A DNA stretch of 64,000 nucleotides from Auanema rhodensis (Eukaryota > Animalia > Nematoda), in NCBI GenBank assembly GCA_964057225.1, contig OZ059898.1, positions 5,022,001-5,086,000 of the forward strand, read 5' to 3'. This document shows, one piece after another, positions 41,067-45,064 of the stretch (position 1 is its first letter; every line of letters begins with the position of its first letter). Under the pieces are notes generated by a model that saw only the letters and a program-made list of their open reading frames with translations, had not been told where the DNA came from and ran no database searches. The translations under genes and the position numbers were made by a program.

Positions 41067-44000
41067 TCAAAACAAGGATTCATAGCTACGCATAGCCGGA
41101 AATGAAGGACTCCGATCCAAACGCTTTCTAGGTAAGTTGATGAGTAGAGTAAGAATTTCACTAAAAGAAGGCCGATCAGCCCCAGAAAAGCTCCAGCACC
41201 TCATCAGCAACTCCTAAAAAAACAAAGATCAAACAATGAAAGCATTTAAATAAAACCACCGACCACCGCATTAGCTTCAAGCTTCGACATTTAATTAAAA
41301 TACACTGACCTTTACTTCGCGTATAGCTTTAATATTATGCATTGGAGCCTTCATTCCATTCCCAACCATCCAGATAATCGTATCAGATTGTTCCCATGCC
41401 CATGGGAAGGAATATGTAAGTAATTCATACCATATTGTACTAGAAAAATAATAAAAACCAGAGGCTTAAAAACGAGGTACCTGAATGCGTAAACGTCAGA
41501 GCTTTCGGAGAAGGGTAGATCATTGAGATCACTGCTTAGAGCACGGATAAGCTCAGGAGCAAGATAAGCCAACCAGTGGCTGGGAACCAGTAAAGAATTA
41601 TTCCTGAAGATCCTAACATGAAATATATTATAACGTCATTTATACCTCATAGGATATGCTAGACGCTTCATATCGAAAGTCCCAAAATCGGTTATAACAA
41701 CTTTATTTTTACTTTCTATGAAGATATTTTTAGAACGCAGATCTTTATGTATTATGTTCTTGGTATGCAAGTAAGAAATACCCTGAAACGTATTAACAAA
41801 AACTACAACTAATCTTTTAAAAAACATACCTGACATACTTGTGTAGCTAATTGGAGAACAACACTGATATCCAAGCGTTCATTAGATTCGTGAATTGCTC
41901 GGTGAAGAGAAGGACCTTTACAAAGACTCATAACGATGCCAAATCGATCATTTTCTTGACAATACCCAAGAAAGAGTACAATATTGTCATGTCTCGTGTT
42001 CTTAAATTAGTTTGAAAGTTAAAATCATCAGTCGCAATAAACAAACCTTGTGCGCGACAACATCAGATTTGAATTCTTCTAATCGTTTAACCTCCTCAAC
42101 GTGATCCATGTTTAAAAATTTGACAGCTACGTCACCGAAATGATACCCACGCAAAACCTAATTTAAAAGTTGACTTAACAAACATAATCAAGCACTCACA
42201 TAACCAAATCTGCCTTTACCAACAAGGCTATTACGCTTGAAATCGATTTCAGAAATCGCGATGGTGACTTCATTCCAACTTGCCTTAAGTAGCGTGATAT
42301 TAGAAAAACAGTTAGAAAAGAAAAAACCTGAGCATTTGGACCACGAATTGTCATTGTATTCCAGCGATTTCGCTCAAGTCTGTTATCAAGGCTCCTACTC
42401 TCCGATTCATCACTATTTACAAGATCAGTCTACAATCAAAAGCATTTATGTTAATAAGTCTAATTAGATAAGCATACGTTCGTACTACCCGTAGAATCAG
42501 CAACCAATGTTCCTTCACTTCCATCTCCAACAAAGCTACTCGAGTGAGTGGACGACACTGTGCCCAATAAATAATCTCTATAAACCAAAATTAGTTGAAA
42601 AAAAATTCAAAATCTCACGTTGAAGTTTCTGGCAAAACAATATCCGGAACTTCAGGAACTGTGTCAGGAAACGTAAAATTTCGCTCAAGAGCTCTAGACT
42701 GTCCAGCACCCACGTTATATGGGCTATTAACAGAGCCCATATCTTTAAACATAAAGAGATAAATTTATAATAAAAAAGATTTCATACTTAAAGGAAATGC
42801 TGGAGTACTAGGTGCTGAGCTATTAGTGGAAGAAGAGCTATCGACCACTGCAGCGTTTTCGGGATATTGAAATGCAGGCTCATTGAAAGATCGGGAGGAT
42901 GGAATACTTGCAGAAGGAGGGTCGTTCCACATATCCTATTAGGAAATAGATTTAATCAATTTCATAAAAGATAAAAACATACGCCATTGTTTTGTTCAAC
43001 TAATCGATCAAATAATAAACGAATGTGTTCAGGAGTTAGCCCACACGTATCTCCAATCCTATTTTTACATTGAGAATGAACCTTCCATCTTTATAGCAAA
43101 GTATATAAGCGAACTGGATAAAATAACTTACTTGCAAGTTCGACATTTTTCCCAGGACGTGAGAAATCCAAAGCCAAGTGGACGCCTACACAGCCGGCAC
43201 ACTGAAAACACGAAAAAGTTACTTTAACCCCATTTATAATTGTACTTGAATCACCACTTCTTAAAAAATATTTAGTTGATCGATGCCATTTATGTGGAAT
43301 AGCGTGTACCAAACGAGATGTCTTCGGTGACTTCACTGAAAAATACAACCGTTCTCGACAAAATGGACTGGATGAATAAGTATTGAGATATTCAATTCGC
43401 GCGATGATACATATTAAAACGATAAAAAATGAGTATTGATATTATAAATGAAACTTACGATATTCTATTAACCAAAAAAAGTATGCAAGTATAAAATAAA
43501 AGTTGACTTACTATTTAACTGCATGCTCGTGGACTGCACCATGCGCCCAGCAGATCCTAATGTTGGAGTTGAATGAGCTGAACCAGCCATAGGTGATGAA
43601 GGTGATAACGTAGACCTTCCGGATAACACTGACAATGATCCACTACCAGATGCTGATCGACTTTAAAAAAACATGAAATTTCTAGATGAAATCAAAATAT
43701 TACTAACCTGTGCCCACTTGCCATATTTGGAGTACTGGGAAAAGAGCCACATGGATCACTATCTAACCCAGGAGACTCACGTCCTTCGTCACCCCTGGAA
43801 AAATAAAGCAGCAAATTAATAAATATTAAAAGTAAATTATACCTAGCTTGAATATCTACTGGAGCTAAAAGATAACGGGGGCTTGGAGGACTAGCAGATT
43901 CAGCACTAGTATCTCTCCATGCATCAGCTTCTAGAAAAATACGTTCAAATCATAAAAATAAGCTCAACCTAATTAACGTACTCGATGACACGGGGGAATA

Positions 44001-45064
44001 AACCGACCAAGATAGTTGTTTATCCGTGAATGAAGATTCTCTACGTCCTAAATCAAATAATATAATTGATAAAAGTAAATTGATTTCTGAATCACCTATG
44101 AATGAGCAAAAACATTGATAAAAGCATCCACCCATGGATAATTAAAATAACCAAAGTTAAAGAAGGCAAAATTGACGAAATATAGCGATGGGGCTGCGCA
44201 AATGAATGGTGGGAATGATAAATGGTCATAGCGAACAGATCAGGTTGTGCGTACGATAGTGATTGATAACAGAACTAAATGTGAGAGGACTGCTAAGAAA
44301 TGTTTTTCTCTGAATTTCATTGCCTGGACGTCAAAATATATAACTTTGTCTAATTCAAGAAAAAAATATTTTAAAAAAGTGAAACATAGGGTGGACGCTC
44401 AAGAATATGATAATGAATCTTAAAAAACACGTACCCTTCAACGCTTCCAGATAACTATTAGCGATGTCACAAGAACGGAGTATTCTTTTTTTCGATTCAG
44501 GTGAATAACGCCCACGATCCGCAAGCAGATTGGTCTAAGAAACAGAGCAAATAAAGTTTGAGGGAAAGCTTTACAAAGCGAGCATACCTCTTTTCGAGGC
44601 TTTTGGATCATAACTAATATATCATGAATGCCGCATAACTCCAAGTGTCGGATGTTCGTCGGAGATAAACCAATAAGTCTTAACCAGTCCGTAAGTCGCG
44701 GTCTTAAAGGTGATGACCGAGAATGAGGTGGGCGTGATATCAAAACACGGGAAAGCAAACGAATCAACCGAGCCTATGTGCGTGGTTAAGTATTGAAAAA
44801 ATTATTTGTCCAAACCTCAAAAGCAACTAATTCTGCTTCTTTCAAGTTACCTACTTGGCCCTCATACTTTTGGGCAAGTGATTCGAATTCCTGTAGAGCA
44901 GAATAATAATCAGAATGTGCTACTGCTGTCCTACTAGTACTAGCCTAAATATTTTTTAAAAAATCAATAAATAGAAATTAGAGAGTGCAAACCTCTGGAG
45001 AAGTCGCATCATGGTCACTACGGAAACTTGAGTGAGCAACTTCCGAAACCGAACTCCCGTGCAT
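41067..45064 (-). CDS. ksr-1: Kinase suppressor of Ras (CC-SAM-like N-terminus, C1 domain, S/T-rich CA4, Raf-like kinase domain)
   Basis: C1 domain [50 protein letters not shown], then [14 protein letters not shown]. Kinase motifs [37 protein letters not shown] and WLAYLAPE; C-terminus [15 protein letters not shown]. Confidence 0.93.

Follow-up and report, generated by a model that had tools for sequence, protein, structure and literature searches.

Intron 4 of a KSR gene in the nematode Auanema rhodensis carries a 40-nt candidate mini-exon which, judged by its conservation in Auanema sp. JU1783, is a real functional element, and the 3´ edge of this element coincides with a proposed splice donor. 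Our tentative preference, held with slightly less than even confidence, is that the conserved 3´ part of the intron comprises an internal promoter and an alternative first exon, which would give rise to a KSR that lacks the CC-SAM module and begins with a Cys-rich N-terminus. In the RAF-MEK-ERK cascade, KSR acts as the core scaffold and as an allosteric activator, and its CC-SAM module is thought to provide both membrane targeting and coupling to BRAF. Such an isoform had been proposed in an earlier sequence-only reading of the window, by which we mean the whole 64,000-nt stretch of A. rhodensis DNA that was analysed (assembly GCA_964057225.1, contig OZ059898.1, positions 5,022,001 to 5,086,000 of the forward strand). 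Coordinates are those of the window unless stated otherwise, and the principal features are as follows.

41067..45064, minus strand: KSR gene in full, long isoform (tblastn with P0001, the ortholog from JU1783, and exon projection)
45064-44993, 44944-44816, 44773-44588 and 44534-44435, minus strand: exons 1-4, predicted N-terminal CC-SAM module (exon projection; AF2 model of an ortholog)
44048..44434, minus strand: intron 4 (387 nt, phase 1), longer than any other intron of the gene (exon projection)
44092..44335, minus strand: conserved block within the intron, with 77-100% identity to JU1783; a candidate for an internal promoter with leader and first exon (identity profile and alignment)
44240..44300, minus strand: acceptor-like TTTCTTAG (exon start 44292) followed by 17 open codons, the basis of a cassette-exon reading
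44178..44184, minus strand: conserved TATA-like TATATTT (direct reading)
44096..44135, minus strand: candidate alternative first coding exon (the mini-exon), 13 codons and the first base of a Gly codon (direct reading)
44048..44095, minus strand: candidate mini-intron of 48 nt; donor GTGATT, acceptor tttgatttag shared with the long isoform (direct reading)
43982..44047, minus strand: shared exon 5, from which the two predicted isoforms would coincide (projection; junction with exon 4 confirmed by P0001)

The gene is a member of the KSR family, as the sequence-only reading had it. Its start codon lies at 45064 and its stop codon ends at 41067, with about 22 exons between them. The exon map was obtained by projecting the 21 exons of P0001, an 839-aa protein of Auanema sp. 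JU1783 that is the closest database protein and matches the window exons at a minimum of 651 of its 839 residues. P0001 contains a Pfam C1 domain and a kinase domain. When a kinase profile built from eight nematode orthologs including P0001 was compared with the PDB, KSR (8bw9_D, E 3e-109), KSR2 and KSR1 outranked BRAF (E about 3e-59), and hallmark sequences of KSR are readable in the kinase exons of the window. The C1 domain (CA3; Pfam C1_1) scores 27 bits against a cutoff of 26.5 on P0001 residues 309-366, and the window exons at 43335-42983 are the aligned counterpart of this region. The FxFP ERK-docking motif (CA4) is present as FTFP and was read directly in the frame at 42764-42618. Thus, the preference of the kinase profile for KSR, KSR2 and KSR1 over BRAF, together with the C1 domain and FTFP, identifies the gene as KSR.

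Several features of the locus and its surroundings were observed along the way. The window contains an extra 44-nt intron (42284-42327, minus strand; donor GTTTTT, AAG acceptor) between ...RGPNAQ and ASWNEV.... Exon 15 of JU1783 does not have this intron (186 nt, compared with 230 nt projected), which marks the gain or loss of an intron between these close relatives. Elsewhere in the A. rhodensis genome, a second KSR/RAF-like kinase locus (G000:C4:10907391-10907720, plus strand) exhibits 44% identity to P0001 residues 544-642 and may be a ksr-2 or RAF gene. In JU1783, the gene for the mitochondrial ribosomal protein bL17m (L002:7197-7928, cluster of P0153) is located about 200 nt 3´ of ksr on the same strand, and the ksr and bL17m genes of Haemonchus contortus bear consecutive locus tags (V3C99_002646 and V3C99_002647), suggesting a conserved tight linkage and possibly an operon.

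The exons upstream of intron 4 had been assigned to the CC-SAM module, and structure prediction supports this assignment. An AF2 model was built from the N-terminal 147 residues of an ortholog (transcript contig L003:97-537) rather than from the joined exons of the window, and it reached a pLDDT of 86.2. The top PDB matches of the model in Foldseek were 5vyk_A (TM 0.69, probability 1.00) and 2lpe (TM 0.61), which are CC-SAM structures of KSR1. CC-SAM (CA1) was undetected in Pfam and in PDB sequence searches, and the SAM exon was resolved by the fold search alone. The last helix of the model ends at the junction of exon 4 and exon 5, so exchanging these exons for the mini-exon would remove exactly one whole module, the counterpart of the KSR1 CC-SAM (CA1) seen in 5vyk and 2lpe.

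Intron 4 is unusually long, as had been claimed: most introns of the gene measure 41-49 nt. Exon 4 ends at 44435 with AAG G/GTACGT in phase 1. Inside the intron, the mini-exon reads ATG GGT GGA TGC ... ATA G/GTGATT, with the ATG at 44135 and the donor G at 44095, and the 48-nt mini-intron would join it to exon 5 at 44047. The candidate donor and the exon 4 donor are both in phase 1, and the exon 4/exon 5 junction is the one confirmed by P0001. Retention of the mini-intron leaves the frame open and yields a 61-aa ORF. The exon, the 48-nt intron, the phase and the open retained frame were thus all found in the DNA as the sequence-only reading had described them. The 40-nt sequence is a single copy in the 181-Mb genome, and no second genomic copy or paralog with the mini-exon peptide was found there.

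An ORF of this type is unremarkable by itself. In 5000 dinucleotide-preserving shuffles of intron 4, a qualifying frame was defined as an ATG frame of at least 5 codons with a phase-1 GT[AG] donor located at least 40 nt before the acceptor. Such a frame arose in 46% of the shuffled introns, and one of at least 13 codons in 32%; a qualifying Met-Gly start was present in 1.0%, although this feature was chosen post hoc. The splice donor is weak: at 4.0 bits, it falls in the 5th percentile of the 38 real donors of the gene pair, which range from 3.1 to 12.3 bits. The start codon is preceded by tcc, a context that is not A-rich. It is the conservation across species that lifts the mini-exon above chance.

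The JU1783 locus (L002) was resolved into 21 exons by exact spliced alignment of P0001. Its intron sizes resemble those of the window, with 14 of 20 introns at 41-49 nt, and its intron 4 (408 nt) is again the longest of the gene and occupies the same place in the same phase. Within this orthologous intron, all 40 nt of the mini-exon are identical (L002:3937-3976). The encoded peptide is thus identical in this one related species; a lack of peptide conservation, together with a lack of transcripts from this intron, had been named in advance as grounds for dropping the proposal. The conserved block corresponds to L002:3740-3977 and is about 88% identical over ~240 nt. In a global alignment scored per 40 columns, the coding exons are mostly 65-92% identical and the other introns 27-55%. 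Across the 4.5-kb gene alignment, no perfect run is longer than the 61 nt from 44152 to 44092. This run comprises the mini-exon, the 17 nt before its ATG and the GTGA after it, so that it stops 4 nt into the proposed donor. The runner-up perfect runs, which are located in the kinase exons, measure 35 nt, and a further perfect run of 31 nt (44307-44277) is found inside the block.

Identity drops sharply just beyond the GTGA of the proposed donor. The counterpart of the mini-intron in JU1783 measures 54 nt and cannot be aligned with the 48 nt of the window, but in both species this segment is in frame, free of stop codons and near the usual intron size. No indels are observed from the ATG to the donor. 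Upstream of the ATG, about 200 nt are nearly as conserved as the mini-exon, and indels of 1 and 6 nt occur there, which means that no frame is conserved in this part.

The conservation exceeds what coding sequence would be expected to show. Among the identical residues of the two KSR proteins, 46% (287/626) are encoded by different codons, and at this rate 12 unchanged codons in the mini-exon have a probability of about 6e-4. The constraint therefore acts at the nucleotide level and may be unrelated to the peptide. Because the mini-exon carries no substitutions, synonymous or otherwise, selection on the peptide cannot be demonstrated. The claim that the mini-exon is a genuine element is thus borne out by its conservation in JU1783 and by the end of that conservation at the proposed donor. 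As the most conserved stretch of the gene, the block would be a control element for KSR expression even on its non-coding readings.

The idea that the mini-exon is a chance ORF in neutral intron sequence without function is scarcely credible. Although the shuffled introns readily produce such frames, 61 consecutive identical bases and the high identity over 240 nt are found in a gene pair whose other introns are unalignable and whose codons differ as often as stated above; the JU1783 conservation effectively refutes this idea. If intron 4 hosted a separate gene for a small non-coding RNA, this would explain a strongly conserved ~240-nt intronic block with unproven coding constraint, but such a gene is very improbable. 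In Rfam (E<=10), the block returned no match worth noting, with top bit scores of 11-19 where the gathering scores are 50-160. Folding of the block on either strand is no better than that of shuffled sequences (z = +1.4 and +0.7), and the 71-nt core likewise shows no excess structure (z = -0.2 to -1.5). A miRNA or snoRNA in the block was rejected on the same grounds, namely the lack of an Rfam family and of excess structure on both strands.

More weight is due to a non-coding cis-regulatory module, in which GATA-type factors would act on an intronic enhancer or silencer of the ordinary KSR transcript and the ATG...GT frame would be a coincidence absent from mature mRNA; this alternative is possible but on the unlikely side. 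Three TTATCA/TGATAA (GATA-type) motifs in the same orientation are present at 44096-44335, where 0.30 would be expected (post hoc P about 0.004). The mini-exon itself holds one of the three, and the JU1783 block contains five; motifs of this type would point to gut or epidermis as the tissue of expression. A module of this type would also fit nucleotide-level conservation that surpasses the coding exons without any synonymous change and that continues through frame-breaking indels for about 200 nt 5´ of the ATG. The ease with which shuffled introns yield ATG-to-GT frames and the blank searches of predicted proteins described below agree with it as well. However, it gives no account of why conservation stops 4 nt into an in-phase GT donor, why the distance from the 3´ end of the block to the acceptor stays at 48 and 54 nt although the spacer has fully diverged, or why the segment from the ATG to the donor is the best-conserved part of the block. 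The rarity of a Met-Gly start in the shuffles (post hoc) also speaks against it. The TATATTT element lies 32 nt upstream of the start of the 61-nt run in the window and 26 nt in JU1783, owing to the 6-nt deletion, and calling it a core-promoter element is speculative. Together with the GATA-type motifs, it is compatible with an internal promoter and equally with an intronic enhancer.

The block may instead be a cassette exon running from the TTTCTTAG acceptor to the GT at 44095, which is decidedly unlikely. Spliced after exon 4, this exon would add 17 codons and a TGA, and the result would be either a short CC-SAM-only protein or, as a poison exon, an mRNA destined for decay that tunes KSR dosage. 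Regulated unproductive-splicing exons typically show very high nucleotide conservation, as the block does, and the limits of the block roughly correspond to this acceptor and donor. TTTCTTAG is perfectly conserved in JU1783, inside the 31-nt perfect run. The exon-4 frame then stays open over 17 codons and closes at a TGA common to both species (run and frame together 44240-44307; L002:3771-3838), and four of five substitutions in these codons occur at third positions (P about 0.05, n=5). On the other side, the acceptor scores 1.7 bits, lower than any of the 39 real acceptors in the two genes. Moreover, the exon would differ in length between the species (197 and 192 nt), the intron downstream of it is not conserved, conservation peaks at the ATG-to-donor end rather than at the stop codon, and transcripts containing it were not found.

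The alternative first exon accommodates the position of the conservation better, and we infer the following course of expression from it. Transcription would begin within the conserved block, perhaps near 44152, 3´ of the TATA-like element and the three GATA-type motifs, and the ATG at 44135 would serve as the translation start. The 40-nt coding part would be spliced over the tiny intron to exon 5 in the phase used by exon 4; if the mini-intron were retained instead, an identical N-terminus would result, in frame in both species. The 13-residue peptide would take the place of the 162-residue CC-SAM module. As computed from the coordinates, the swap in JU1783 would exchange 487 nt for 40 nt, and the predicted product of about 690 aa, compared with 839 aa for the long form, would retain all parts from the Ser/Thr-rich region onward, among them the C1 domain, FTFP and the kinase domain. 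This reading is supported by the identity of the mini-exon at the orthologous place in JU1783, by the end of the 61-nt run in the donor, by the lack of indels from the ATG to the donor, by the near-constant size of the diverged mini-intron, by a donor within the range of the real donors of the gene, by the CC-SAM boundary at the exon 4/exon 5 junction, by the GATA-type motifs, and by the precedent of mouse T-KSR2 (PMC4050188). It is weakened by a nucleotide-level constraint that may be unrelated to the peptide, by the nearly equal conservation of about 200 nt 5´ of the ATG, by the Tyr at residue 6, by the weakness of that donor, by the start context that is not A-rich, by the failure to find a transcript, and by the lack of a similar exon in strongylids, Caenorhabditis angaria and Mesorhabditis.

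The transcript and protein searches weigh little, because they covered called ORFs rather than reads and one of them missed known orthologs. Word searches of predicted proteins gave no match for the 61-aa intron-retention ORF in the 34-107 aa band and none for L003:523-1122 in the 110-350 aa band. In the 461-1468 aa band, the search with P0001 residues 150-420 retrieved nothing beyond long isoforms and orthologs from strongylids, and it also missed known orthologs such as those of Pristionchus and Diploscapter. Among the called ORFs of these three length bands, no predicted protein begins with MGGCFYQCF.... The exact 40-mer of the mini-exon had 0 matches in metagenome contigs, and the JU1783 annotation contains the long KSR form only.

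The proposed N-terminus had been likened to an SH4-type myristoyl/palmitoyl signal, a comparison that the sequence weakens. The peptide begins Met-Gly-Gly-Cys, with Gly2 directly after the initiator Met (ATG GGT, 44135-44130) and Cys residues at positions 4, 8 and 10. The N-myristoylation pattern of PROSITE (PS00008) is G-{EDRKHPFYW}-x(2)-[STAGCN]-{P}. Gly3 and Gln7 conform to this pattern, but residue 6 is Tyr, which lies outside Ser/Thr/Ala/Gly/Cys/Asn, and the pattern fails. Known acylated N-termini include the SH4 segments of the Src family (Met-Gly-Cys) and GAP-43, which is palmitoylated without myristate. The mini-exon peptide shares with them its shortness, Gly2, several Cys residues and a hydrophobic setting that in principle could tether a protein to the membrane. 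Compared with the Src-family SH4, it has its first Cys at position 4 instead of 3, Tyr6 and no basic patch, and it is known as a predicted translation. Since its first Cys is at position 4, it is not an SH4 motif. Gly2 and the three Cys residues thus stand, whereas Tyr6 and the position of the first Cys count against the SH4 assignment. N-myristoylation of the peptide appears doubtful on these residues, and S-palmitoylation of Cys4, Cys8 and Cys10, which are located among aromatic residues, is plausible, though this is pure inference.

A Cys-rich hydrophobic N-terminus of this type might be S-palmitoylated and substitute for CC-SAM in membrane association. CC-SAM/CA1 promotes KSR1 membrane association and BRAF binding according to a passage of PMC5583734 that cites Koveal et al. 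2012, and the former role could thus be taken over by a lipid anchor. Binding of the BRS domain is beyond a 13-residue peptide, and the isoform would therefore differ in its RAF coupling. The complete proposal, in which a GATA-driven promoter in intron 4 would produce an S-acylated, membrane-tethered Auanema KSR with a 13-residue Cys-rich lipid anchor in place of CC-SAM, is unlikely. If it were true, membrane recruitment of KSR would be uncoupled from CC-SAM/RAF-BRS control, and the isoform could prime the ERK cascade in a tissue-specific and possibly Ras-independent manner. A natural isoform with a lipid anchor in place of CC-SAM would amount to a ready experiment in which membrane targeting is separated from BRAF coupling. 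The reach of the proposal is limited to two species of a non-model genus and to an isoform predicted from the genome.

The architecture proposed here is already known in kind, since mouse T-KSR2 uses an intronic first exon. This exon has a leader of 62 bp and adds 55 bp of coding sequence of its own, in frame with the rest (PMC4050188). Like the Auanema candidate, mouse T-KSR2 (testis/sperm) and human KSR2b combine an intronic first exon, an ATG of its own and a short in-frame coding segment into an N-terminally truncated KSR (PMC4050188). T-KSR2 differs in starting in intron 5, in losing more than CA1 and in having been found by 5´ RACE, whereas the Auanema exon is known here from genomic DNA; moreover, the unique peptide of T-KSR2 is not described as a lipidation signal (PMC4050188). 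No identical human genomic sequence was found for the mouse exon (PMC4050188), while the Auanema exon is identical in two species. The sequence-only reading knew of no description of the isoform it proposed. The literature search, which covered openly accessible papers, likewise returned no relevant report on ksr-1 isoforms or on myristoylated, palmitoylated or CAAX-tagged KSR. The statement thus holds for a lipid-anchored KSR and fails for intronic first exons of truncated KSR, which have been published (PMC4050188).

A KSR that naturally lacks CC-SAM also exists as KSR3 of non-chordate metazoa, which activates ERK without RAS (PMC10322840). Adding a SAM domain back to KSR3 slightly lowers ERK activation, and KSR3 is reported to have been lost in nematodes (PMC10322840). 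KSR3 is encoded by a gene of its own and has a kinase core that is remodelled and inactive (PMC10322840), whereas the Auanema isoform would use the KSR1-type kinase exons and change the N-terminus alone. If the isoform exists, worms without KSR3 could still make a CC-SAM-less KSR by promoter choice.

The sequence-only reading had asked for exons of the Met-Gly-x-Cys type in the orthologous introns of other nematodes. JU1783 contains one; none was found in Cylicocyclus nassatus, Haemonchus contortus, Nippostrongylus brasiliensis and C. angaria. The orthologous intron is in phase 1 and long in all four, measuring 5.1 kb, 3.0 kb, 3.8 kb and 528 nt, respectively. No block shared by the three strongylid introns was found, and none of the four introns showed a counterpart of the conserved block, a similar exon or a Met-Gly...Cys frame. 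A scan of the whole locus in Mesorhabditis belari, where the orthologous intron was not mapped, revealed no Met-Gly...Cys ORF. On present data, the element appears to be specific to Auanema.

Two other nematode KSR genes show features at or near the N-terminus. In C. angaria ksr-1 (L006:2743-2781), an ATG located 39 nt before the acceptor of the orthologous, likewise unusually long intron is in frame into the next exon (MFQIYIFLQSRFP-DLHHKRDS). The MFQIYIFLQSRFP frame may be due to chance, and its peptide is neither a Gly2 peptide nor Cys-rich. The annotated KSR of Diploscapter pachys (P0006, locus L005) has no recognisable CC-SAM and begins with a hydrophobic, Cys-containing peptide (MMCWRYSIFVAPVC...), which is followed by a long Ser/Pro/Gln-rich stretch. 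This N-terminus represents either a mis-annotated 5´ end or another CC-SAM-less form of KSR.
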